IMG/VR virus record: IMGVR_UViG_3300014494_000005
Span: 124,001-188,000 of that record
Length of the DNA: 64,000 bases
Direction: 5' to 3' (one strand)
Shown: piece after piece, positions 3,390 to 21,722 of the stretch
Layout of the letters: every line of letters begins with the position of its first letter
How positions within the stretch are numbered: the first letter of the stretch is position 1
Notes under the pieces: model-generated
Told to the model about the DNA's origin: nothing
Database searches by the model: none
What the model saw: only the letters and a program-made list of their open reading frames with translations
Made by a program: the position numbers and the translations under genes

Positions 3390-4505
3390 TTAACTATTTT
3401 TAAATGTTATATTATAAGGAGTACCACCAGCTATTGTACTTGTTGGATAATTACTAATGTAAAATTTATAATTTACTCCTGACCAACAAGAACTTGGAGA
3501 ATTTACTGATACTGTTGTTGGTGCATTAAATAATCCACCCGGTATTGATTCTGTATTTGTTGTTGGTGCATTTGAACCTTCCCACTTAGTTTTTGTTGTT
3601 GATGTTGCGGGAGTTGCAAGCCAAATATATTTGCTTGTAACATTATAATTTACTATGACATTACTACTACTATCAATTACACATTTAGTACCTGTTGTAA
3701 GTAATGCTGAACCAGCAGTAGGAACACTTACACTATTTCCATAAAAATATGGATATATACCACAAACAACAGCACATGATGAAATTGTATCTGCAGAACA
3801 TGTACAACCTGTCATTAAATTTCCATCACTTTTTGTAGGTGCTATTCCTGCAGTATAATCAACAACACCAAATGCAGTATTATTACCAGATGATATTGTT
3901 ATACTTGGCATTATGCATGTATTAGTTATTCCCGAATATTGATTACCACCCATATCTGTAAAAACATAACAATCAGCAACGCCTGTTCTATATTGAGTAC
4001 CACCACAATATACGGGAAATACACTACCCCTGTCAAAATTTATTGTTCCAGTAAATGCAATACTACAACCTATTTCAAAAATTGTTGTTGTTGGTGATAA
4101 TGAAAGTGAACTACTTGGCGATATTAATGTAGGATAAAGTACTGGTGCAACCATCATTTCAATTATACATGATAATTGACAACCTATAATAGGAGTATTA
4201 ATATCTAATCCACCAACAGAACATGTTGTAGGTGATGCACCATTATATATTGTCGAACCACCTGATGCAGATGATTGTGCTAATGATATTGTTTTTGTAG
4301 TATCACAATATGTTAAAACATATCCATCTGTTGAAAATGATGCACCACTTGCAGTAAGTAATACATTAGTTGGAATTGGATTACCATCAGTAAGTGTTAA
4401 ACCAGATACAGATGCTATTTGAGTCTGACCTTCTAAGGTTAGTGTACTTCCACTTAATTGCTTAAATTGAGTATTCTCTAAGTTTGGTCTTGCGAAAAAT
4501 GGCAT
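3390..4505 (-). CDS. Cys-rich virion structural protein, paralog of the C-terminus of 1420..3387
   Basis: 371 aa; shared blocks CxVGGL, FxRG, GxYPxF. Confidence 0.55.
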   Translation of the reverse strand: MPFFARPNLENTQFKQLSGSTLTLEGQTQIASVSGLTLTDGNPIPTNVLLTASGASFSTDGYVLTYCDTTKTISLAQSSASGGSTIYNGASPTTCSVGGLDINTPIIGCQLSCIIEMMVAPVLYPTLISPSSSLSLSPTTTIFEIGCSIAFTGTINFDRGSVFPVYCGGTQYRTGVADCYVFTDMGGNQYSGITNTCIMPSITISSGNNTAFGVVDYTAGIAPTKSDGNLMTGCTCSADTISSCAVVCGIYPYFYGNSVSVPTAGSALLTTGTKCVIDSSSNVIVNYNVTSKYIWLATPATSTTKTKWEGSNAPTTNTESIPGGLFNAPTTVSVNSPSSCWSGVNYKFYISNYPTSTIAGGTPYNITFKNS

Positions 4506-4506
4506 G

Positions 4507-5235
4507 TCATTTTGTATTTATTAAAATACTTATATTATTTTTTAATATTTCTGAAAGATTTTTCTTTTCAGTATATGGAATACGCAATAATTTAATATTA
4601 TTGTTTAATGCATATTCTGTTTTTAATTTATCGTTTAATTTAGTTTTTTCAAATTTTATATTACCGCCAAAATGTTTAAAAATTTTATGGTGTTGTTCAC
4701 CATCATATTCAATTAATAAATTTTGATTTGGCAAATAAAAATCAAAAAATAATTTATATTTATTATTTTTACAATCATCAAATTTTTTTTGATATTCAAA
4801 TAAAACATTATTTTCTTTTAAATATTTTATAATATTTTCTTCGCCTTTCGAATTTTTACAAATAGGACAACCTTGACTACACAAATGAGCATTAGGTTTT
4901 TGTAAAAATTCACCATGTTTTTTACAAATTATATTTATCTTTTTATGTGCATTAACATATTTTACTAATGAATAATTATACTTATTATCATGTATAATAT
5001 TTGCCTTTTCAATAAATTCCTCTATCGTTGATTTTTTACTTGGATGTGAACACTTTGAACAACCATGACCATCTAAATGGTCAAATGGTATTTGCTCAAA
5101 TATTCCATGTTTTGAACAAACTATTTTAATTTTATTTCTATTACCCGTATATTCAACCAAAGAATAATCATAAATATTATTATGTATTTTATTTGCTTTT
5201 TCAATAAATTCTAATGTAGTTAATTTATTTTTCAT
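4507..5235 (-). CDS. Putative homing endonuclease (zinc-ribbon repeats + Vsr/PD-(D/E)xK-like nuclease)
   Basis: Repeats FIEKA..IH..YDYS..I.C..HG.F.Q....HL...GC..C; C-terminal FDFYLP..LLIEYDGEQH. Confidence 0.75.
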   Translation of the reverse strand: MKNKLTTLEFIEKANKIHNNIYDYSLVEYTGNRNKIKIVCSKHGIFEQIPFDHLDGHGCSKCSHPSKKSTIEEFIEKANIIHDNKYNYSLVKYVNAHKKINIICKKHGEFLQKPNAHLCSQGCPICKNSKGEENIIKYLKENNVLFEYQKKFDDCKNNKYKLFFDFYLPNQNLLIEYDGEQHHKIFKHFGGNIKFEKTKLNDKLKTEYALNNNIKLLRIPYTEKKNLSEILKNNISILINTK

Positions 5236-5350: not shown

Positions 5351-5379
5351 AAAACCCGTAAGAATTTCTTACGGGTTTT
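5351..5379 (-). terminator. Intrinsic terminator after the ARPP-like gene
   Basis: aaaacccgtaag/cttacgggtttt perfect inverted repeat with A/T tails. Confidence 0.8.
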
Positions 5380-5397
5380 AAATAAATAATTTAAATT

Positions 5398-6504
5398 TTA
5401 TAAAGTAAATTTTTCTTGCTTTCTAGCTTTTTTTCTCAATTCGTTAACTTCTCTATAAGCATTAGGGTCAAATTTTTCTCTTTTAACTATACTTACAAGA
5501 TGATTAAATTCATTTTCAGTAATCACTTGACCAACATAACTATTATTAGTTTCTTTTAAAACATAAGATTTTGGTGCTTTTGCAAAAGTTGATTGTCCTT
5601 CTGTATCAAGAGTTGCATCAAAAGTAAGTTCAAGTAGTTCTTGAATCTTTTCCTGAACATTAGCTGTCATATTCTGTTTTGTTTTCTTTAATGCTTTTTC
5701 AAGTAAATCAACAATATTTTCTTGATGAGTTTTTTTCATTTCATTATATGTTGAAGTAAATTCTTTTCCAGAACTTTTCTTCTTAATTTCAGAAATGATA
5801 GCCAAAGAACCATAACAGTCACGAATCATCAAATCCCATACCTGTTCAGCATATGTGAATGAAGGAAATTTGTCTATTGCAACAATTTCACCATCTATTA
5901 AAACAATAATACCAATAAGATTACGTGGACGTTCAAAATGTGCAATAAACTGTTCAAGTTTCTTATCATATTTTTCGAAATATACATTCAAGTAATTACC
6001 TGTACCAGATTGAGTATCACTACCCAATTTCTGAATAGCAGGATAAATTCTTGAATAACCACCTGTTTGTCCAATTGTATCAAATAACATTTCACGCATT
6101 GATACGGGTATCATACGAAATTCATTAGTTCCACAAAAATAACCTGTTTGTCCACCTTGTACACAACCTGCATCATGATAAGTGGTATTTGCATATTTTT
6201 CCAAATAACCCGCCTTTATCATACCATGATTTTGAGCACTTTGTTTAGTCATAACAGCCATTTGAGTAGGTACAATAACTTCTTTATTTTCTTTATTAGT
6301 AAAACTAATTTGACCATAAGTTTGATTACCTGCTTGAAGCGAAGTTAATGGATTCGCAAATCTAGTATCCAATGAGTTTTCTTCATCAGTTGTCAATGTT
6401 ATTATTGACATATTCATAATAGATTGAATAATAATATTTCCATTTGAATCTTTATGTGGTCTACATCCCTTTAAAAGTTCAGTAAATTCTCTTTGATTAT
6501 TCAT
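5398..6504 (-). CDS. ARPP-1 / DUF6569-like protein
   Basis: 368 aa; KQSAQNH...GCVQGGQ and GIIVLIDGEIVAIDKF resemble the family's KQNR...CVEQGRW and G....I.G.....D.F motifs (recognised by eye). Confidence 0.6.
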   Translation of the reverse strand: MNNQREFTELLKGCRPHKDSNGNIIIQSIMNMSIITLTTDEENSLDTRFANPLTSLQAGNQTYGQISFTNKENKEVIVPTQMAVMTKQSAQNHGMIKAGYLEKYANTTYHDAGCVQGGQTGYFCGTNEFRMIPVSMREMLFDTIGQTGGYSRIYPAIQKLGSDTQSGTGNYLNVYFEKYDKKLEQFIAHFERPRNLIGIIVLIDGEIVAIDKFPSFTYAEQVWDLMIRDCYGSLAIISEIKKKSSGKEFTSTYNEMKKTHQENIVDLLEKALKKTKQNMTANVQEKIQELLELTFDATLDTEGQSTFAKAPKSYVLKETNNSYVGQVITENEFNHLVSIVKREKFDPNAYREVNELRKKARKQEKFTL

Positions 6505-7067
6505 AATTTTTTAATTTTAATGTTATTAATTTTACATTCGTTTAAATATGCCTCATATGCTAATTTTTCATTCGAATATCTACCAATATATTTAATCTTT
6601 CCATTAATTGTAATTCTACTAACCCAAGGATTAGTTTTATCGTTTGGAGAAAATGAAACTCCAATATAATTAGAACTACTTTTCATTTTCTGTCTTGCAT
6701 GATGAGTATTTTCTCTTGCAGTACACCATTCTAAATTATTTAATATATTATCTTTTTTATTACCATTTTTATGATTAATTTGTTTATAATTAAATGGATT
6801 TAAAAGAAATGCATTTGCTACTAATTTATGTACTAAATATGCTTTATTAATACCTTTCTTACCTAATGAAACCATTAAATATCCACCATTTATTTGATAT
6901 GTATTTTTCAATGAACCTTTTAATTTTCGTTTAACACCCATTTTATTTATCACAAATCTATCAACACTTCTTAATCTACCAAAATTACTTATTTGATAAT
7001 ATCCTTCATAATCAATAACATCCTTCCATTTTTCAAATAAAAATAATTTTAATTTATCAAGTATCAT
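6501..7067 (-). CDS. NUMOD4-HNH(-AP2) homing endonuclease
   Basis: WKDVIDYEGYYQISNFGRLRS (NUMOD4); VHKLVA..F...INHKNGNKKDN..NLEWCT..EN (HNH); YIGVS...W...I...YIGRY (AP2-like). Confidence 0.9.
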   Translation of the reverse strand: MILDKLKLFLFEKWKDVIDYEGYYQISNFGRLRSVDRFVINKMGVKRKLKGSLKNTYQINGGYLMVSLGKKGINKAYLVHKLVANAFLLNPFNYKQINHKNGNKKDNILNNLEWCTARENTHHARQKMKSSSNYIGVSFSPNDKTNPWVSRITINGKIKYIGRYSNEKLAYEAYLNECKINNIKIKKL

Positions 7068-7075
7068 ACAAATTA

Positions 7076-8710
7076 TTAATCGTTTATATTAATTTTTTTA
7101 ATTCTTTTAACAGGTGCTGCTTCAAGAGCCAATACCTGATTTTCCAACCAACGTTTTGTATCAATTTCAAGCAATCTTGCATTGATTTGAGGCTGTAATG
7201 CGACTGGATTATTTATTGCCATTGTGACAACACCTTCACCCAATTTTCTTACATTAGCACCCATTTCAGCACTTGTAATTGGTGATATTTGGAACATTGG
7301 AATATTCCTACCACTTTCTGCTTTCCAAATTGAAATAACTTCATTAGTCAATCCATCATAAGCATTTTCATAACCATCTGTTAAAATAAAAATTGCATCA
7401 TATGGTTTTAAAGAATTTTCTTCTTTTAACAAATCAATAAATGATGTTGCCAAATCAGTAATTTCACCTCTAGTATTTACTCTGTTAGATTCTTTTGCTG
7501 AAGCAGTTAGAACCAATGCAGTAAAATCTGCAATAGCCATTGGTGTATTTTTTGATTCATTTTTATCACCAGTCATAGATACACTTTTATCGACAATAAC
7601 ACCAATATTCTGGTAAAAGAATCCCTGAATTTTTTTCTTTTGTGCAAGTTTTACAATTGCTGACCTAATTTCGTCAGTAAAACCATTTTCATAACCAGTT
7701 TTGTAAAGTGCAAGAAAATCAGTTGCTTTTTCCAAATCAACAGTTTTTTCAACACCCAACTTTGCAGTTGATTTGGTTTGACGAACCTGCTGATTTACAG
7801 AAGTAACTTCAACATTCTTACGAATAAGTGCTTTTGTTGCTTCTTTCTGAATATCAGTTGACCACATTGAATGATATTGTGGATGTTTTACACTTGAAAT
7901 TAAACCAAGTAAAACTTCTTCTGGTACATTTTTAATACCAGTAATATCAATTTTTGCTTTCTGATATTCACTTAAAAGAGGAAATTCAGTTGCATTATAT
8001 GCTACGCCACTATCTTTTTTAAATAAAAATAATAACAATTTGAATGCTTTAATTGAATCACCATTGAAATATTTCAATATACATTCATTTACAATACTCA
8101 TTTCTTTTTCACTTCCAAGCAAAGTTGCTCCATTAATATTTATTTGTTTTTGAGCAATTGAAAGTAATATTGATGTTTTCTTAACACCATATGCATGCCT
8201 AAGTACTTCAGCAATTTTATTACGATATTTCATTGAATAGAATTCAAGATTTGCTTGACCCCAAATAAAACCAAGCATAATTTTTCTTGTTCTTTCATTG
8301 TTTACTTTTTCATTCTTCAAATCAATGAAAAGACGTAATACATATGGTAAACCATTTTCGCCAAGATTGTTTAATGCAGAAAGTACTGCCTTATCACTTA
8401 AACCATTATCATACCAATCAATTGGATTAACAATATTACATGCTCCACCCCTTAAAGTATTTTTGAATTCATTCAAAAGTACTTCAGAAACAAATCTACC
8501 AGTAGCTCCTTTTTGACTTGCTATAATCAATGGGAGTTCCTTTGAAAGTTTATACAGGTTCTTTATTTGACCCTGAATTGCTTTCATTTGTTCGTCTTTA
8601 CTGTGATAGTAAGTTGCTGAACTTTTACTACCAGATGCAATAGTAAGACCATCAATTAATGATTGCTTAACTGTTGCCAACATTTTCTGTGTTAATACCA
8701 AATTTTCCAT
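7076..8710 (-). CDS. Divergent Ro60/TROVE-like RNA-binding protein with C-terminal vWA domain
   Basis: MIDAS VDKSVSM, TDLA, IFILTDGYEN; N-terminal SGSKSSATYY and MKYRNK...VLRHAY echo Ro60 GxxxGTYY and KYxxR..DLLRLxH; likely start MENL at 8710 (8770 overlaps upstream gene). Confidence 0.65.
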   Translation of the reverse strand: MENLVLTQKMLATVKQSLIDGLTIASGSKSSATYYHSKDEQMKAIQGQIKNLYKLSKELPLIIASQKGATGRFVSEVLLNEFKNTLRGGACNIVNPIDWYDNGLSDKAVLSALNNLGENGLPYVLRLFIDLKNEKVNNERTRKIMLGFIWGQANLEFYSMKYRNKIAEVLRHAYGVKKTSILLSIAQKQININGATLLGSEKEMSIVNECILKYFNGDSIKAFKLLLFLFKKDSGVAYNATEFPLLSEYQKAKIDITGIKNVPEEVLLGLISSVKHPQYHSMWSTDIQKEATKALIRKNVEVTSVNQQVRQTKSTAKLGVEKTVDLEKATDFLALYKTGYENGFTDEIRSAIVKLAQKKKIQGFFYQNIGVIVDKSVSMTGDKNESKNTPMAIADFTALVLTASAKESNRVNTRGEITDLATSFIDLLKEENSLKPYDAIFILTDGYENAYDGLTNEVISIWKAESGRNIPMFQISPITSAEMGANVRKLGEGVVTMAINNPVALQPQINARLLEIDTKRWLENQVLALEAAPVKRIKKININD

Positions 8711-8720
8711 AATATATAAT

Positions 8721-9551
8721 TTATTTATTAAGTGCAAGTTGAATTTTCTTTGATTTTTCAACAAAATCACGTAATCTATTTGTTACATTTTTACTCATTT
8801 CATCAGTAAGATGACCACCCTTTGCCATAAGCATTGTTTCAGCAACTACCGCAATACCTTCTAATATTATTGCTTGGTCATGTTGCATTTCATCAATCCT
8901 CATTTTCAGTTCCAAATAATCCTCAGAAACATTTTGTTCAGGATAAAACGCTTGATTTAACCATTTTAATCCTTCTTCACCAACCATAATACGTTTTATA
9001 TATTTGTTACTTTCTAATGGTTCGCATGTAAAATAACCTTTATTAATAAATTCTGGAAAAGGTTTATTATGTTCATCAAGAATTCCTCTCAAACGTAATT
9101 GTTCATAAATTTTATATCTTCCGGTCTTACAATTACTATTATTCTTCAAAACATTTGTTGCTTCACTTAAAGAAAAAACAATTTTTCTTATTTTTTCTTG
9201 TGTTGCAGTAATTCCATATTTGAACAACTCTTTTATTCTGTCATTACACCAAAAATAAAATTCTGGTGAAAGCCACTGTGCAAAAATTAAAGCAATATCT
9301 TCATGTATCCAAGTTCCTTGTGCAGATTTATCATTACCACCCTGCCTAATCATCACTAAATCAGCCGTATTGATATTCTTCAACTCGGCATATTTAGCAA
9401 TAATTCTTTGTGCAGTATCAGTTTTTAACCAAAAATTTGGTTTAACATCAAAAAGATTTGCCATTTCCGTGGCATTTATCATAACATTACTGCCTGTGAG
9501 AAATGAAATTTCATTTCCTTCAAATTCAAATTTTTTAATTTCTTCTTTCAT
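8721..9551 (-). CDS. KilA-N domain DNA-binding protein with antirepressor (ANT/KilAC-like) domain
   Basis: INATEMA...GTWIHEDIALIFAQWLSPEF; GRYKIYEQLRLRGIL..P..EFINKGYF..GEEGLKWL. Confidence 0.85.
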   Translation of the reverse strand: MKEEIKKFEFEGNEISFLTGSNVMINATEMANLFDVKPNFWLKTDTAQRIIAKYAELKNINTADLVMIRQGGNDKSAQGTWIHEDIALIFAQWLSPEFYFWCNDRIKELFKYGITATQEKIRKIVFSLSEATNVLKNNSNCKTGRYKIYEQLRLRGILDEHNKPFPEFINKGYFTCEPLESNKYIKRIMVGEEGLKWLNQAFYPEQNVSEDYLELKMRIDEMQHDQAIILEGIAVVAETMLMAKGGHLTDEMSKNVTNRLRDFVEKSKKIQLALNK

Positions 9552-9603
9552 GATATTTTAAATTGAATTTTTATATTATCAAAATCTAATTAATTTTTGA
9601 TGC

Positions 9604-9634
9604 CAAATATATAAAAAGTTTATTTAAAATCCAA
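9604..9634 (-). promoter_or_regulatory. Bacteroidota-type promoter for the KilA-N / Ro-like / HNH / ARPP operon
   Basis: Minus strand TTG (9632-34), 20 nt, TATATTTG (9604-11). Confidence 0.7.
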
Positions 9635-9676
9635 CTATTATACCAAAAGAATATCAAAATATTACAAAAAACAAAA

Positions 9677-9723
9677 AAATGGGCAAGTATTGATTAATTT
9701 CTTAATCAAATCCCCGCCCATTT
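9677..9723 (-). terminator. Terminator-like hairpin closing the ncRNA array
   Basis: AAATGGGC/GCCCATTT outer and TTGATTAA/TTAATCAA inner stems, followed by a T-run on the minus strand. Confidence 0.65.
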
Positions 9724-9755
9724 CTATTTTAGAAAAACACTTCTTTCAAATAAGA

Positions 9756-9847
9756 GAAGAAGTTTAGTTGTAATTTGGTAAGTTTGTCCCCTCTCTCACG
9801 AAGGGGATTTCATTTTTACAATTTACTGTATTCACAACAAGTTCTTC
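9756..9847 (-). ncRNA. Y-RNA-like structured RNA C (conserved stem + TCCCCT/AGGGGA hairpin)
   Basis: GAAGAA/TTCTTC and GTTGTGA/TTACAAC stems; motif AAGAACTTGTTGTGAATACAGTA shared with neighbours. Confidence 0.7.
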
Positions 9848-10013
9848 AGTATTCCTTTTTTAGAAAAAAAAGCACTTCTGCTCGAAAAACCATTTTTAAC
9901 CAATTAAATGTTAGGTGATATAATTTGTTTTTGTAAAAAACTCTGATATCAACAACTAAAAACTTGCGGGTTTAATTTGTTATTATTAACAACTTTTTAC
10001 CGCTTTATAACTT

Positions 10014-10158
10014 AGGGAACAATTTTAAAGTATTTGTTGTTTTTGTTTTGCAAGTTTAACTGACTTGTGACTTAACCAGCTTGTCTAATTATTCAATTTT
10101 GGCGAATAATGATGGACTCGAACCATCGAAATTACTGTAAACACTTTACGTTTTCCCT
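10014..10158 (-). ncRNA. Y-RNA-like RNA B containing a circularly permuted tRNA-like domain (YrlA-like)
   Basis: AGGGAA/TTCCCT and TAAAGTGTTT/AAATACTTTA stems enclose T arm GATGG-TTCGAGT-CCATC, acceptor ATTATTC-GCCA-AAATT-GAATAAT, D arm GAC-AAGCTGGTTAA-GTC, anticodon arm CAAGT-CAGTTAA-ACTTG. Confidence 0.8.
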
Positions 10159-10196
10159 TTGTACTATTATGCAATTATATATCGCATTTAAATTTG

Positions 10197-10333
10197 TGGG
10201 GAGAGCAGGATTTGAACCTGCACATCATTGTTTTAACGACAATTGCTTTACCTTTTACTGAAAATACAATCAGTTCTCTCTGTTAAGAGAGCAGTGAGAT
10301 AGTATTTTTTGTTTTTTATTTTGCTATCTCCCC
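10197..10333 (-). ncRNA. tRNA-like RNA D with ~65-70 nt D-loop insertion carrying the shared stem motif
   Basis: Acceptor GGGGAGA/TCTCCCC, T arm GCAGG-TTCAAAT-CCTGC, anticodon arm ATTGT-CGTTAAA-ACAAT; insert AATACTATC..CTCTCT-TAAC-AGAGAG-AACTGATTGTATTTTCAGTA. Confidence 0.8.
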
Positions 10334-10359
10334 ATATATTTTAAAGAACTTTAAAAATT

Positions 10360-10448
10360 AGAAGAAATTTGTTAGTATTGTTTTTCTGCCGTCACTCATG
10401 GACGGCATACATTATTTTTCAACTGCTGTAAACACTATCAGTTCTTCT
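10360..10448 (-). ncRNA. Y-RNA-like structured RNA A (conserved stem + TGCCGTC/GACGGCA hairpin)
   Basis: AGAAGAA/TTCTTCT and TAGTGTT/AATACTA stems; motif AAGAACTGATAGTGTTTACAGCA. Confidence 0.7.
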
Positions 10449-10525
10449 CATTTTGATTAAGTTGGCGCAGTCTTCTTTTGTGACTTACTTTCAACGGAGT
10501 GTATGCCGTGACCTCTTAATCTTTG

Positions 10526-10597
10526 TAGCGGGAGAGGGACTTGAACCCCCGACCTTTTGGTTATGAGCCAAACGAGATGCCTCTTCTCCACCCCGCA
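10526..10597 (-). tRNA. tRNA-Met(CAT), initiator-like
   Basis: TGCGGGGTGGAGAAGAGGCATCTCGTTTGG-CTCATAA-CCAAAAGGTCGGGGG-TTCAAGT-CCCTCTCCCGCTA; T1:T72 mismatch; CCA not encoded. Confidence 0.92.
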
Positions 10598-10644
10598 ATA
10601 TACTTTTTAATCTTTTTAAAGAACGTTATATCATTTTGACGATG

Positions 10645-10675
10645 CAAATCTATAACACATTTTTTAATTGTGCAA
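10645..10675 (-). promoter_or_regulatory. Bacteroidota-type promoter for the tRNA/ncRNA array
   Basis: Minus strand TTG (10673-75), 20 nt, TAGATTTG (10645-52); GTATTTAT motif also at 10721-28. Confidence 0.7.
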
Positions 10676-10768
10676 GTTTTTTTCAAAAAAAATAAAAAAT
10701 ATTTTACAACGTCTGGAAAAATAAATACGTAGAAATTTCAAAAAAGTTATTGTTTTTTATAAAATATT

Positions 10769-13700
10769 TTAATCATCTTTTATAACTCTCTGATTTTGAC
10801 GTGCTTTATTTAAAATATTAAATACATTTTTTTCATTTTCTTGTGGCTCATCAGGGTCAATTAATAATTTATTTTCCAATTCTTTTATATTAATATTTTT
10901 ATTTGTTCTTTCAATTAATGGTTTTATTGTTAAATTTTCTTCTTTAATCTCACGATTTTTTTCAACAATATTATTATCAATTTCTTTAACAAAAACTCCC
11001 GGTGGAACAAATTTAGTTAAATCTAATGATTTTTTAATATCTTCTAATTTTACTTCTGGTTGATTAATAATTTCATTAATTGTACTACCTGATTCACCAT
11101 TCCATTCAAATGGTTCTTTTTTTTCATCCCTTTTTATTTGTTCTTCATGAAATATTACTTCAGGATGAATTATTTCTTCATTTAATTCTTCAACCACACC
11201 ATTAATTTCCAGTATTGCTTCGTTGGCAATATCAATTATTTGTTTAATTTCATTTTGATTTAAATCTATTCTTGTAGTACTAATATGAATATTTTCTATT
11301 TGTTTAACAGGAACACCATGTATCTCACCTTCAATCTCTCTTCTCATTTGTTCAATAAAATCACTACTTTCAGCTTTAATCGGTTCGGTCTTAACAATAG
11401 GTTCTTCTTTTTTTACAATAGGTTCGTCAGTATTTGTTTTTATTACAGTTTCATTTTCTTTTACTGTATTTTGTTCAATTTCAAATTCAGAATTGTTTTG
11501 CAATAATCTATTAATTTCAGTAGAAGATAAATTTACAACATCAACAGCATTTTTAGAATCTTCAGCAAGTTGACTAACAACAACATGCATTTTATTTGCA
11601 GTACTTTCAACTTTATTTACATCATTTTCATCGTAATGTTTCAGTTTATTCTTTACAGGATATTTTGAGTCAGTTATAATAATTTGCATTGTATCATTAT
11701 TAAAAATACAATCTTCAAATGTTTGTCCATCTTTTGCAAATCTTGCTTTAAGAATACTAATATTAGCAAAATTTGCATCTTGTTGTGCTGGTGTTTTAGC
11801 AACTGACATAAAAAAATGTGCTTTTTGAATTCTTTTAATATTGCCACCTGTTTGTTGTGCTCCAACAATTGCAGCACCAAAACCAGAACGATTAGTTTGA
11901 ATTGCTGACCATGCAGGTATATCAAAATCTGAAGCAAGTGCTTCAAAAGATTTTACTATTTGTAATTCAGCTTCATTTCTATCTGGTGATTTTTTATGAG
12001 ATTCAAGGCAATCAAGATAATCTATTACAAGTATATCAAATTTAAAACCATATTTTTTTTGATATCCTATCATCCAATTTTTAATATCCAACATTGTAGT
12101 ATTTTCCTGACTAAATTGTTTAATCAAAAGTCTACCTTTTCCTTCTAATGATTCTGCTTTTTCTGTTGCAATTTTAAAAACTCTTGCATTTTCATCCTCA
12201 TCATCAAGTTTACTTAATGCAGATTTTGCCCAAATAGTATAATGTTTACGTTTAATCTGTTCTTTTGTATCTTCAATTATAATTTGTGCAACATTTTTTT
12301 CTTGTTCATAAGCAGTATTAGCAATAATTGTAAGTGCAGTAGTATTATGTGTTAAAATATAATCATCAATTATATATAAATGGTCATTATTTTCAACATA
12401 TATACATGTTGCATCTTCTTCATGTGAATATTCAATATTTTTTATAAATTTATTATATTCATATTTATCACGAATTACAATTCTATCAAGTTTGGTAGGT
12501 AAAGTACATGGTTTAATACCATTGTTTGGAAAACTTATGGTTAAACAATAATTTTTTTTACCTAAAACTTTTACACCATTTTTATTATACGATTTAATTT
12601 TTTCGTTAATTCTACATGTTCCACCCAATGATAATACTAATTCTCGAACATTTTTTGATAATTCTTTTGAAACTGTAGAATAAATAATTGAATGATTTTT
12701 ACCAACACCACCATCTGAATCAATTAAACCTTGTAATAATTTTTCTCTATATTCGATACAATTATATAAATAAATATTAGGAATAAATTTATTAGTTGAA
12801 TCAGTACCATATAAATTAAGTTCTGTTTCTAAAACATTTCTCGAATTTATTAATGATATTCGATATAATTTTTTATAATTTTCTTTTCTTCCTTCATATT
12901 CATGAACAATAACATTTTTTTCAAGATTACATATTTTATCAACAATAAATAAATCTGATGTTATAATGTGTGGTTGATTTTTTCTTGTTAAACATCCATC
13001 ACCCAATAATACCCCCATTATATAAGGGTCAATTTTAACCTCTAATTTATTAAATTGAATTGGTAATACATTAGGTAATCTATAATTTAAATTATTTTTT
13101 ATTTTAATATCTTCCATAATTTCAGACGTTTTTAATATCTGAAATGTATGGTCAGGAATACTTAATGTTTTACCATTTATATTAGTTTTTTGATTTCTTT
13201 GTTTAAATGAATTAACTGCCCATAAATGTTCTACATCACAATAAGATATTGTTTGGTCTGAAAAAGTAACTTTATATATTTTTCTTTTACCTTGTGGATA
13301 TACTGCTAATATTTTTTGTTTTTTTCCGTCACTACCAAAAATATAATCATTAACTTTTAATGTACCATTTTCAACCCAACCATTTGGTGTTAATACTTTA
13401 TGGCTATTTGGCAAGGCTTTTCCTACACCTGATGGTGTTAATATTAAACCAATTTCACCTTTACCAAGACCACCACCAGTCAATGAATCTATTACACCAA
13501 TTCCAGTAGGTATTGGTTGTCTAAATTCTTTTCTTAATGCTTTTTCAATACCTTCTATTACTTCTTCACAATCATCTTCATCCTCACCAATATGTGTAAT
13601 TTTTTGAAATTTTTCTTCAATTGCTGCAATAACATATTTACTTTTAATTTCACCATTTTTTACTTTATCAATAATACCTTCAGCTAATTTACGATATTCT

Positions 13701-14089
13701 TGTTGTTTAATAAAAGAATTTGTAGATTTTTGTATAACATCTCCATCATAAAGCATTTGTTTATTAATAATTCTTTCATTCCAAAGTTCAATACGTTTAA
13801 TTACAGCAAATAATGATTCTTCTTCAATTACATTATTTGGAGTTTTATATTTATTAATTGCTTGATGAATACTTTGATTTTGAAGATTTGGAACTTTCTG
13901 AAATTCTTTAAAATATTCTAAAATAATTAAAAATAATCTTCTAAGATTTGGGTCATCAAAATATTCAATTGCTATATCTGGAATTATTTTTTCTGCAAAC
14001 TCTGGTTCAACTAACAACTGCCACATAAGATGTTGTTGAAATTCAGGACCTAAATATGATGATAATGTATTTTCTGTTATATCTGCCAT
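10769..14089 (-). CDS. Replicative DNA helicase (gp41/DnaB family) with intein and acidic C-terminal extension
   Basis: IPTGIGVIDSLTGGGLGKGEIGLILTPSGVGK|TT Walker A split by intein; DILVIDYLD; WSAIQTNR; ILKARF. Confidence 0.92.
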   Translation of the reverse strand: MADITENTLSSYLGPEFQQHLMWQLLVEPEFAEKIIPDIAIEYFDDPNLRRLFLIILEYFKEFQKVPNLQNQSIHQAINKYKTPNNVIEEESLFAVIKRIELWNERIINKQMLYDGDVIQKSTNSFIKQQEYRKLAEGIIDKVKNGEIKSKYVIAAIEEKFQKITHIGEDEDDCEEVIEGIEKALRKEFRQPIPTGIGVIDSLTGGGLGKGEIGLILTPSGVGKALPNSHKVLTPNGWVENGTLKVNDYIFGSDGKKQKILAVYPQGKRKIYKVTFSDQTISYCDVEHLWAVNSFKQRNQKTNINGKTLSIPDHTFQILKTSEIMEDIKIKNNLNYRLPNVLPIQFNKLEVKIDPYIMGVLLGDGCLTRKNQPHIITSDLFIVDKICNLEKNVIVHEYEGRKENYKKLYRISLINSRNVLETELNLYGTDSTNKFIPNIYLYNCIEYREKLLQGLIDSDGGVGKNHSIIYSTVSKELSKNVRELVLSLGGTCRINEKIKSYNKNGVKVLGKKNYCLTISFPNNGIKPCTLPTKLDRIVIRDKYEYNKFIKNIEYSHEEDATCIYVENNDHLYIIDDYILTHNTTALTIIANTAYEQEKNVAQIIIEDTKEQIKRKHYTIWAKSALSKLDDEDENARVFKIATEKAESLEGKGRLLIKQFSQENTTMLDIKNWMIGYQKKYGFKFDILVIDYLDCLESHKKSPDRNEAELQIVKSFEALASDFDIPAWSAIQTNRSGFGAAIVGAQQTGGNIKRIQKAHFFMSVAKTPAQQDANFANISILKARFAKDGQTFEDCIFNNDTMQIIITDSKYPVKNKLKHYDENDVNKVESTANKMHVVVSQLAEDSKNAVDVVNLSSTEINRLLQNNSEFEIEQNTVKENETVIKTNTDEPIVKKEEPIVKTEPIKAESSDFIEQMRREIEGEIHGVPVKQIENIHISTTRIDLNQNEIKQIIDIANEAILEINGVVEELNEEIIHPEVIFHEEQIKRDEKKEPFEWNGESGSTINEIINQPEVKLEDIKKSLDLTKFVPPGVFVKEIDNNIVEKNREIKEENLTIKPLIERTNKNINIKELENKLLIDPDEPQENEKNVFNILNKARQNQRVIKDD
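12344..13417 (-). mobile_element. Class 3 (Ala1, WCT) intein with LAGLIDADG endonuclease, 358 aa
   Basis: Starts ALPNSHKVLTPNG, ends ILTHN|T; HLW (block B), ATCI (block F); VLLGDG and GLIDSDG motifs. Confidence 0.88.
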
Positions 14090-20618: not shown

Positions 20619-21722
20619 ATGAAATATAATACAGAAACATTTATTGAAAAAGCTAAAGAAATTCATGGCGATAAATATGACTATTCTTTATCGGAATATA
20701 AAAAAAATCATTTAAATGTATCAATTATTTGTAAAAAGCATGGAGTTTTTAAACAGATACCTGCTAATCATACAAGAAAAACTAATCCACATGGTTGCCC
20801 TAATTGTGCGAGTAATAAAAAATTAACAACCAAAACATTTATTGAAAAAGCTAAAGAAATTCATGGCGATAAATATGACTATTCTTTAGTTAAATATATT
20901 GGCGCACATGATATTATAAAAATTATTTGTCTTAAACATGGAATTTTTGAACAAAAAGCATTTGCCCATTTGCAAAATTATGGGTGTCAAATTTGTGGAA
21001 ATAATAAAAAATTAACAAAAGAAATATTCATTAAAAAAGCTAAAGAAATTCATGGCGATAAATATGACTATTCTTTATCGGAATATAAAAATAGTCACAC
21101 TAAAATAAAAATAATATGTCCCAAACATGGAATTTTTGAACAAAAGCCAAATAATCATTTATCAAAACAAGATTGTTATAAATGTGGAGAAATTATTAGA
21201 AGCAATAATAAAATTTTAAAAGCTAAAAATAGTTTTATTGAAAAAGCTAAGAAAACGCATGGTGATAAATATGACTATTCTTTAGTTAAATATATAAACT
21301 GTAGGTCTAAAATAAAAATTATTTGTCTTAAACATGGAATTTTTAAACAATCACCGCATTCACATATAAATAATCATGGATGTCCTGATTGTTATATTTC
21401 AAAGGGTGAATTTAAAATTAAAGAAATTTTAAATAATAAAAATATTAATTTTATATTTCAAAAATCATTTGATAATTGTAAAAATGAAAATAATAAAAAA
21501 TTAAAATTTGATTTTTATTTACCAAAACAAAATATTTTAATTGAATATGATGGAAAACAACATTATGAACCTATTGAATATTTTGGTGGCTTGAGTTCTT
21601 TTAAAATTACAAATGAATATGATAATATTAAAAATAATTATGCTAAAAATAATAATATTAAATTAATAAGAATACCATATTATAAATATAAAATTATTAA
21701 TAAAATATTAAATTTTTTATGA
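20619..21722 (+). CDS. Putative homing endonuclease (4 zinc-ribbon repeats + Vsr-like nuclease)
   Basis: Four FIEKAKEIHGDKYDYS repeats, near-identical at DNA level; FDFYLP..ILIEYDGKQH; paralog of 4507..5235. Confidence 0.8.
   Translation: MKYNTETFIEKAKEIHGDKYDYSLSEYKKNHLNVSIICKKHGVFKQIPANHTRKTNPHGCPNCASNKKLTTKTFIEKAKEIHGDKYDYSLVKYIGAHDIIKIICLKHGIFEQKAFAHLQNYGCQICGNNKKLTKEIFIKKAKEIHGDKYDYSLSEYKNSHTKIKIICPKHGIFEQKPNNHLSKQDCYKCGEIIRSNNKILKAKNSFIEKAKKTHGDKYDYSLVKYINCRSKIKIICLKHGIFKQSPHSHINNHGCPDCYISKGEFKIKEILNNKNINFIFQKSFDNCKNENNKKLKFDFYLPKQNILIEYDGKQHYEPIEYFGGLSSFKITNEYDNIKNNYAKNNNIKLIRIPYYKYKIINKILNFL

Follow-up and report, generated by a model that had tools for sequence, protein, structure and literature searches.

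A Ro60-like protein paired with an ARPP-1 family gene beside structured RNAs in a phage locus and in bacterial tRNA arrays

Ro60/Y-RNA particles are conserved from bacteria to humans, and the Ro60 partners known from elsewhere are PNPase and RtcB. To our knowledge, the roles of Ro60 and Y RNAs in bacteria are established for only a few species. Could a phage locus that joins a Ro60-like protein to another kind of partner gene, behind a row of structured RNAs, encode a particle of this type? The question is raised by a 64,000-nt stretch of viral DNA (the window; positions 124,001-188,000 of IMG/VR record IMGVR_UViG_3300014494_000005). The locus lies on the minus strand, downstream of the gene for the helicase DnaB, and runs in the order tRNA-Met, four structured RNAs, KilA-N gene, 544-aa open reading frame (ORF), HNH gene, ARPP-1 gene and terminator (Table 1). 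These elements had been listed in a preliminary description that proposed a phage Ro/Y-RNA-like system, and all of them are present on that strand. The proposal is supported on the points open to computation, and none of the refuting conditions named in that description held where they could be examined in silico. In our view the locus probably specifies a divergent ribonucleoprotein of Ro60/Y-RNA type that serves tRNA arrays and has ARPP as its enzyme partner.

The Ro60-like protein, its partner gene and bacterial tRNA arrays

The 544-aa protein had no match in Pfam, PHROG, NCBIfam, PADLOC or PDB sequences. More than 360 close homologues (~80% identical) are encoded on contigs of up to ~360 kb that are jumbo-phage-like in appearance, and a further 343 clusters at 50% identity match the family profile. 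Public sources name the homologues only 'VWA domain-containing protein' or 'hypothetical protein'. An AlphaFold model built from 134 diverse family sequences (predicted local distance difference test, pLDDT, 92.8; predicted TM-score, pTM, 0.90) has ~20 helices over residues 1-360, followed by an alpha/beta domain; it replaced a poor first model from 25 close homologues (pLDDT 66, pTM 0.40). Foldseek comparison of the model with the PDB placed Ro60/TROVE proteins at all of ranks 1-13, aligned over their full length (~580 columns, E 1.6e-7 to 3e-3) and including Xenopus and human Ro60, Deinococcus Rsr and Thermus phage phiLo Ro60. The next match had an E value of 0.03 and a TM-score below 0.2, leaving Ro60/TROVE proteins as the sole significant full-length structure matches of the model, in line with the TROVE-like architecture first proposed. 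Among viral models, Ro-like and TROVE proteins were found in the top 8, including a 'Ro-like RNA binding protein'. The predicted domains are a helical TROVE-like domain (about residues 1-360) and a vWA domain with a metal-ion-dependent adhesion site (MIDAS) formed by D374-x-S376-x-S378 and T444-D445-G446. D374, D445 and G446 are invariant among the 134 sequences, S376 and S378 are conserved in at least 90%, and the site aligns with the MIDAS of canonical Ro60. In a joint MAFFT alignment, S.TYY..(D/E)Q, LR.F, N..R, KY(R/Q), PEE/EM and the MIDAS fall in canonical Ro60 columns with their order kept; the TYY and KYR motifs, named as Ro60-like in the preliminary description, align with the same motifs of the canonical proteins. 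The predicted fold makes the 544-aa protein a remote relative within the Ro60 superfamily; its sequence does not demonstrate membership of the TROVE family. Phage-encoded Ro60 folds are already known from Thermus phage phiLo (PDB 9l5y, PMC12135203; ranks 12-13 in the PDB search) and from actinophage Ro-like proteins (that of Gordonia phage VanLee was rank 2 among viral models). Unlike the window protein, these are recognisable TROVE proteins, and an ARPP partner is not reported for them in the literature examined.

The gene for the Ro60-like protein is closely tied to the ARPP gene. Among 75 viral loci compared, ARPP directly follows the Ro60-like gene in every locus long enough to show both, usually with a gap of ~20 nt, and the order is kept in four distant phage loci (L072-L075) that are only ~27% identical. 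An HNH gene separates the two in a few relatives (L010, L011, L013, L059); elsewhere they lie ~20 nt apart. KilA-N is a sporadic insertion outside the conserved module, and its homologue was undetected in most related loci. In the phage relatives, the Ro60-like and ARPP proteins are 72-86% identical, compared with mostly 40-75% for DnaB. In 54 ARPP sequences, conservation reaches at least 90% at H93, C114, Q116, Q119, R137, R228 and C230. An enzymatic function directed at ribose moieties has been predicted for ARPP (Iyer et al. 2022, PMC9503650), and the conserved set of Cys, Gln, His and Arg residues fits the enzyme predicted there. Systems centred on ADP-ribosylglycohydrolase (ARG) in the same study contain the ARPP-1/ARPP-2 Pfam family with Cys and Gln conserved, and vWA proteins in some neighbourhoods, but the two-gene contexts of ARPP reported there (HIRAN, WYL, deacetylase) are without a Ro60-like partner or tRNA arrays. 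Family match, residue conservation and gene order together mark ARPP-1 as a predicted enzyme whose gene is obligately partnered with that of the Ro60-like protein.

The pair is also found in bacteria. A scan of one genome per species yielded 61 bacterial or metagenome-assembled genome (MAG) loci at ~27% identity, in Pirellulaceae and other Planctomycetota, Myxococcota (including the complete Minicystis rosea chromosome), Saprospiraceae, Pseudohongiella and Phycisphaerales. ARPP follows the Ro60-like gene in 54 of the 61, and the bacterial partner scores 116 bits against Pfam PF20208. Five of the remaining seven loci end at a contig edge right after the match; the other two (L133 and L136) are weak matches in which no ARPP was detected. 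Strict adjacency across phyla speaks for the proposed partnership. The bacterial pair lies inside or beside long tRNA arrays, with up to 40 tRNAs no more than 5 kb from it. All 426 tRNAs in the 554 kb around the pairs are on the pair's strand. Of the 47 loci with at least 1 kb of upstream sequence, 33 have a tRNA within 1 kb upstream, and a T-arm motif is found upstream on the coding strand in 37 and on the opposite strand in 5. At six Myxococcota loci (L085, L103, L106, L099, L108, L126) the same arrays encode a canonical Ro60 that matches both Pfam models (TROVE up to 1e-36, vWA_Ro60 1e-64), and nine bacterial array loci carry HNH endonucleases. Clustering of neighbouring ORFs, which in GC-rich loci was polluted by antisense ORFs, returned only HNH, canonical Ro60 and unannotated ORFs as recurrent families. 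The module, first described as a candidate phage system, is a widespread, unannotated companion of tRNA arrays and is not confined to phages.

Known long tRNA arrays resemble these loci in having 13-40 co-oriented tRNA genes, HNH genes and non-canonical tRNA-like genes, and in occurring in the same phyla, including Planctomycetes and Proteobacteria. Published accounts of such arrays, in the parts accessible to us, report HNH, peptidyl-tRNA hydrolase, RF-1-domain and hypothetical genes, but do not mention the Ro60-like/ARPP pair. Full-text literature searching for tRNA arrays in combination with Ro60, vWA or ARPP gave no relevant result, and the occurrence of the pair in such arrays is not described in the literature searched.

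Several individual loci have features of their own. L076 (JBAZIW010000001.1, 362,763 bp), deposited as a 'Candidatus Paceibacterota' MAG, carries a phage-type locus at 82% identity and, being as large as the related viral contigs, is probably a misbinned jumbo phage genome. In M. rosea (L085), the canonical Ro60 (74-1465) stands at the head of a ~40-gene tRNA array and is followed by a 125-nt RNA resembling a miniature transfer-messenger RNA (tmRNA; 1723-1847, with G3:U70 in the acceptor stem, a T arm and an ACC end) and by a tRNA whose anticodon loop holds an insertion of 54 nt (1852-1975). A tRNA-rich 204-kb contig with the Ro60-like/ARPP pair (L119) carries a GOLLD RNA (1439-1877, 165 bits) and a group I intron (7602-7820, 81.6 bits); although binned as Bacteroidales, it is probably phage. 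The last tRNA upstream of the Ro60-like gene has a two-base anticodon in a shortened loop, as called by ARAGORN, in three unrelated loci (L073:5559-5633, L099:4233-4307, L101:4450-4522).

Structured RNAs upstream of the protein genes

The RNA that we call YL precedes the Ro60-like gene and is encoded on its strand. Its structure was predicted by RNAalifold from an ordinary MAFFT alignment of 20 loci (A14). The 5' and 3' ends form a bipartite basal stem, AGGGAA/UUCCCU and AAAGUGUUUA/AAAUACUUU, with AAAGUGUUU/AAAUACUUU as its helix H2. On this stem stand, in order, a T arm, a capped acceptor-like stem of 6-7 bp, a U-A and D arm, and an anticodon-like arm. Of the 35 predicted pairs, 20 show compensatory changes, and 97.6% of cells are paired, compared with 38-55% in controls in which the partners were slid. 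The tRNA-like arms covary and 9 of the 16 basal-stem pairs never vary, which is the pattern expected of a protein-binding stem. A covariance model of YL RNA (R2) found one strong copy (107-182 bits) in 45/45 related phage loci, in each case ahead of the Ro60-like gene and on its strand. In bacteria, the homologues have tRNAs or tRNA-like RNAs before them, so homologous loci do carry RNAs, as had been anticipated.

The order of T arm, capped acceptor stem and D arm defines the bacterial Y RNA YrlA, and M. smegmatis YrlA, whose acceptor stem has 7 bp, is an RNase P substrate to which CCA is added (Chen et al. 2014, PMC4201824). YL RNA has the same arm order, a point absent from the preliminary description, on a stem made from its own ends, and its capped acceptor stem of 6-7 bp is similar to that of the RNase P-cleaved YrlA. 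It thus combines a YrlA-type architecture with placement on the same strand within 4 kb of the Ro60-like gene. The capping loop begins with RCCA in many phage copies and has 3 nt in others, so cleavage is not implied for all. Unlike YrlA, YL RNA has a basal stem with a conserved sequence of its own (AAAGUGUUUACAGUA / AAAUACUUU) and keeps an anticodon-like arm. Its 5' region, read by eye in A14, is ..AACGAAAAG.. in about half of the 20 sequences and ACUGAAAG or ACGUAAAG in the rest. An element C, considered as a separate small RNA, was rejected because it is the 5' half of YL RNA. Sub-threshold YrlA matches were seen in the distant phage loci L075 (34.9 bits, gathering score 69) and L074; the permuted modules there were not counted, as tandem tRNA-like genes whose acceptor arms match may have produced them at their junctions.

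A basal stem of this kind recurs in the two RNAs that we call A and D3. The motif GTRWWTWCAGYA, a pattern derived from its own four copies, occurs 4 times in the 64 kb, in each case on the minus strand within 9824-10435, compared with 0.24 occurrences expected. One copy lies in RNA A (10424-10435) and one in D3 (9824-9835). Both RNAs match model R2 end to end through the basal stem alone (A, 30.9 bits, E 1e-6 in a 1.3-kb search; D3, 28.1 bits), and both have short hairpins where YL has its tRNA-like module. An alignment of D3 from 23 loci (A12) shows covariation in the basal helix and in the GC-rich hairpin. A BLAST match to the stretch 10524-10378, which overlaps RNA A, was found in only 5 other loci. 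The suggestion of a shared stem with interchangeable payloads holds good: YL, A and D3 have a basal stem in common and carry different payloads.

The fourth structured RNA, B, is tRNA-like in another way. It has an acceptor stem of 7-8 bp, an anticodon-like arm and a T arm, with an insertion of ~75 nt (helices P2 and P3) in the place of the D arm. Compensatory changes affect 19 of 29 pairs in alignment A6 (RNAalifold) and 28 of 29 in a model-fitted alignment, in which 98.1% of cells are paired, compared with ~50% in slid controls. Read as a D-loop insertion, with a D stem spanning it, the RNA has that stem paired in only 52% of cells. Helix P2 pairs AAUACUA with UAGUGUU, as does the basal stem of the other RNAs, and position 33, in the anticodon-like loop, is G in the window copy. 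Model R1 finds 1-3 copies of B RNA per related phage locus. A homologue of 60% GC in a Myxococcota MAG (L109:3458-3601, 60 bits) differs in sequence and keeps every helix, with P2 fully compensated. ARAGORN made no call on B RNA, and the Rfam tRNA model covers its 3' part only (model positions 9-63, 25.2 bits, below the gathering score of 29). A large insertion between acceptor stem and T arm is common to B RNA and to tmRNA and other tRNA-like RNAs; unlike tmRNA, B RNA is without a tag-coding region and has G3:C70 and not G3:U70. The only Rfam tmRNA signal, of 7.8 bits, lies elsewhere in the array. No Rfam family scored above threshold for any of the four structured RNAs, and none matched B or YL over its full length. 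B and YL count as at least two new RNA families, neither of which reaches the gathering score of any Rfam model. The original picture of an array of tRNA-mimic RNAs holds for these two of the four RNAs; the other two carry hairpin payloads.

Further RNA features were seen at and around these positions. The tRNA-Met has a first acceptor pair flagged as non-standard, which is initiator-like, and its anticodon stem is closed by two G:C pairs only. Of the 29 related phage-family loci scanned, 25 have a tRNA-Met call at this position, as does the distant locus L072. An orthologous tRNA of 73-77 nt lies ~35 nt upstream of tRNA-Met in eleven loci (L033, L040, L047, L049, L051, L053, L056, L057, L059, L069, L016); its anticodon differs in nearly every phage (tca, ttc, tta, atc, gtt, aca, tat, cgt, caa) and its D and T arms are conserved. 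The window is without this tRNA. Between tRNA-Met and RNA A, the minimum-free-energy fold has a further hairpin (10457-10524, minus strand), GAUUAAG...CUUAAUC around ~50 nt. The Planctomycete RNA that directly precedes the Ro60-like gene has D, anticodon and T arms, which form a tRNA-like module on a long, interrupted and covarying stem made from its flanks. Its anticodon triplet varies, among orthologues that are otherwise almost identical, between CTT, TTT, TAG, ATG, ACG and CGT. This RNA, found in L080, L087, L089, L091, L095, L097, L105, L111, L081 and L082, is 84% conserved overall; two mismatches lie in the middle of its acceptor stem, which the flanking helix extends.

Readings of the locus

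A particle of Ro60/Y-RNA type is the simplest account of the locus, because it covers the fold, the strict pairing with ARPP, the co-oriented tRNAs, the presence of canonical Ro60 in the same arrays and the Y-like RNAs. The bacterial Ro60 (Rsr)/YrlA/YrlB systems of Salmonella, M. smegmatis and mycobacteriophages (PMC4201824) likewise have a two-domain protein, helical TROVE-like and vWA with MIDAS, and several Y-like RNAs per locus, within ~1-2 kb upstream and on the same strand. They differ in that the genes found with Rsr are for RtcB/RtcA or PNPase; here the obligate partner is ARPP-1, and the pair is embedded in tRNA arrays. In the particle that we propose, the same-strand RNAs just upstream would be the Y-like RNAs of the 544-aa protein. 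The sequence-conserved basal stem common to YL, A and D3 would be the likely protein-binding site, and the payloads would differ from RNA to RNA, one of them being a permuted tRNA mimic built like YrlA. ARPP-1, as a predicted Cys/Gln enzyme on ribose-containing substrates, would take the place of PNPase or RtcB and would probably be recruited through the vWA/MIDAS domain. The likely job of the particle would be surveillance, processing, repair or protection of array tRNAs or tRNA-like transcripts, such as during translational stress or when tRNA nucleases attack. A tRNA-directed job seems the most likely because the same pair is embedded in co-oriented bacterial tRNA arrays. The analysis itself shows the predicted fold, the linkage of the two genes, the structures of the RNAs and the linkage of these RNAs to the protein gene. 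Binding of the RNAs by the protein, recruitment and substrate of ARPP, and the biological role, including the decoy, sensor or adaptor functions first suggested for the RNAs, are inferences.

Several results weigh against this account. Neither Pfam TROVE (PF05731) nor the Ro60 vWA model (PF25045) matches the window protein or any of 66 diverse members of the family, and profile searches against PDB sequences miss Ro60. Comparison with canonical Ro60 alignments by hhalign aligned the vWA part only, at a probability of 63-72% (best E 3e-5, 72%); this is weak negative evidence, since the canonical alignments were shallow (effective number of sequences, Neff, ~2). The Foldseek TM-scores are modest (0.3-0.46, root-mean-square deviation ~10 A). 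As profile methods see the vWA part alone and Pfam TROVE was never matched, the protein is placed in the Ro60 superfamily by fold only. In the RNAs, covariation in the basal stem of YL is thin, with 6 of 16 pairs and mostly invariant helices. The Rfam YrlA model (RF02553) had no match in positions 9500-10800 of the window even at E 10. The YrlA motif GNCGAAN0-1G near the 5' end is not conserved in the 20 sequences of A14 as read by eye, and its initial G-N is absent; in escaping both the protein and the RNA models, the locus differs from Rsr/YrlA systems. About a fifth of the bacterial loci (~10/47) are without a tRNA-like element upstream. No RNA-ligase or RtcB-type gene was found near the locus, as the preliminary description had noted for rtcB, and the neighbours are replication genes.

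A stronger form of the Ro60/Y-RNA account would make the pair an unrecognised, ARPP-locked branch of Ro60 that is the dedicated machinery of mobile tRNA arrays in bacteria and jumbo phages. The Y-like RNAs would dock on the protein ring by the basal stem, their swappable payloads, permuted tRNA mimics and tRNA-like genes with freely varying anticodons, would serve as bait, decoy or guide in conflicts over tRNA integrity, and ARPP would contribute a new RNA-end or ribose chemistry. We regard this extension as speculative and rather unlikely.

The proteins might instead act on the ordinary tRNAs of the arrays, in maturation, quality control or regulation, and form no stable Y-type particle; the odd RNAs would then be decaying tRNA genes or spacers. 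The bacterial pair does sit among normal-looking tRNA genes, the anticodons of adjacent tRNA-like genes are unconstrained, and pseudogenes are known in tRNA arrays (PMC4758250). However, YL and B are under strong structural selection (compensatory changes in 20/35 and 28/29 pairs), the basal stem is invariant in sequence, and YL is found in 45/45 phage loci. Decay does not yield a capped acceptor stem together with closed ends, and ARAGORN finds only one true tRNA in the phage window. We therefore judge this explanation improbable.

Somewhat less credit still is due to the idea that the vWA protein and ARPP have nothing to do with RNA and form a module for conflict or ADP-ribose processing, in which the vWA domain is a peptide-binding chaperone and the whole a passenger on mobile tRNA islands. 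ARPP was defined in ADP-ribosylglycohydrolase-centred systems, where vWA chaperones are also found (PMC9503650), and tRNA arrays are horizontally mobile and carry HNH genes. Against this, the N-terminal two thirds of the protein match Ro60 and not a bare vWA protein. The co-orientation of 426/426 neighbouring tRNAs with the pair, and an association that spans AT-rich phages to GC-rich Myxococcota and Planctomycetes, also argue against a passenger. No PADLOC defence family was matched, and no ARG, Nudix or phosphatase gene is among the gene families common to several bacterial loci. That the RNAs are cis-acting leaders, sensors or attenuators with tRNA-like or tRNA-binding folds that control the downstream genes, is hardly credible: they do lie directly upstream on the same strand, with a hairpin and U run seen by eye before the protein genes, but some phages keep both the RNAs and the Ro60-like gene with KilA-N inserted between them, the RNAs have closed ends and tRNA-type processing features, and no riboswitch or T-box family was matched.

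A divergent Ro60/Y-RNA particle would bear on several fields. The 343 clusters at 50% identity add a large Ro60-related family, and the orphan enzyme family ARPP gains a concrete RNA-linked context. Long tRNA arrays, for which a reserve for translational stress and an anti-defence function have been proposed, gain their first conserved protein partners, as far as the literature search showed. The modular RNAs suggest a simple binding code of one conserved stem and variable payloads that can be tested.

Gene calls and neighbouring genes of the window

The features of the locus are collected in Table 1. The start of the 544-aa ORF was placed at the ATG at 8710 and not at the GTG at 8770, judged from the starts of its homologues. 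The ~800 nt after tRNA-Met are non-coding, without a minus-strand ORF of at least 40 aa clear of the tRNA gene.

Table 1. Coordinates and supporting evidence for the minus-strand features of the locus (positions within the window)
Feature	Position	Strand	Evidence and remarks
tRNA-Met(CAU)	10525-10597	minus	ARAGORN; Rfam tRNA 56.3 bits; first gene of RNA array
Candidate Y-like RNA A	10348-10456	minus	Bipartite basal stem (GAAGAA/UUCUUC, UAGUGUU/AAUACUA) and short hairpin payload; model match only
B RNA, tRNA-like, ~140 nt	10190-10340	minus	Covariation; model R1 159 bits
YL RNA	10014-10158	minus	RNAalifold/covariation; model R2 176.7 bits
Candidate Y-like RNA D3	9742-9856	minus	Basal stem GAAGAAC.UUGUG / UUACAAC.ACUUCUUC and GC-rich hairpin payload
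KilA-N domain protein	8721-9551	minus	Pfam KilA-N 1.4e-19
Ro60-like protein, 544 aa	7076-8710	minus	AlphaFold model, Foldseek and motifs
HNH/NUMOD4 homing endonuclease	6501-7067	minus	Pfam, PHROG
ARPP-1 family protein	5398-6504	minus	Pfam PF20208, 9.4e-12, 45.3 bits (cut-off 27)
Intrinsic terminator ending protein operon	5351-5379	minus	13-bp stem, 5 G:C pairs, T run

Of the two terminators first described, the one that ends the protein operon is strong and was called by the terminator scan; for the one placed after the RNA array, a hairpin and U run at ~9720-9675 were seen by eye only and the scan made no call. The promoters claimed before the RNA array and before the protein genes did not stand out, as promoter-like sites in the AT-rich window are at chance frequency (36 found, 35.6 expected) and the scan was uninformative.

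A nucleotide search of GenBank phages gave only matches to homing endonucleases or of tRNA size. The DnaB-like replicative helicase gene (10769-14089, minus strand) is split by a LAGLIDADG/Hom_end intein (Pfam). The DnaB matches of relatives are shorter, which suggests that the intein may not always be present in them. At least three genes of homing-endonuclease type lie within 20 kb (4507-5235, minus; 6501-7067, minus; 20619-21722, plus): a phrog_559 HNH gene, the HNH/NUMOD4 gene and a DUF723/treble-clef gene, one of them exactly between the Ro60-like and ARPP genes. Past the terminator that follows ARPP lies a 371-aa ORF (3390-4505, minus strand) without a family match. It is absent from the bacterial loci and is found in nearly all related phage loci, at 33-57% identity.

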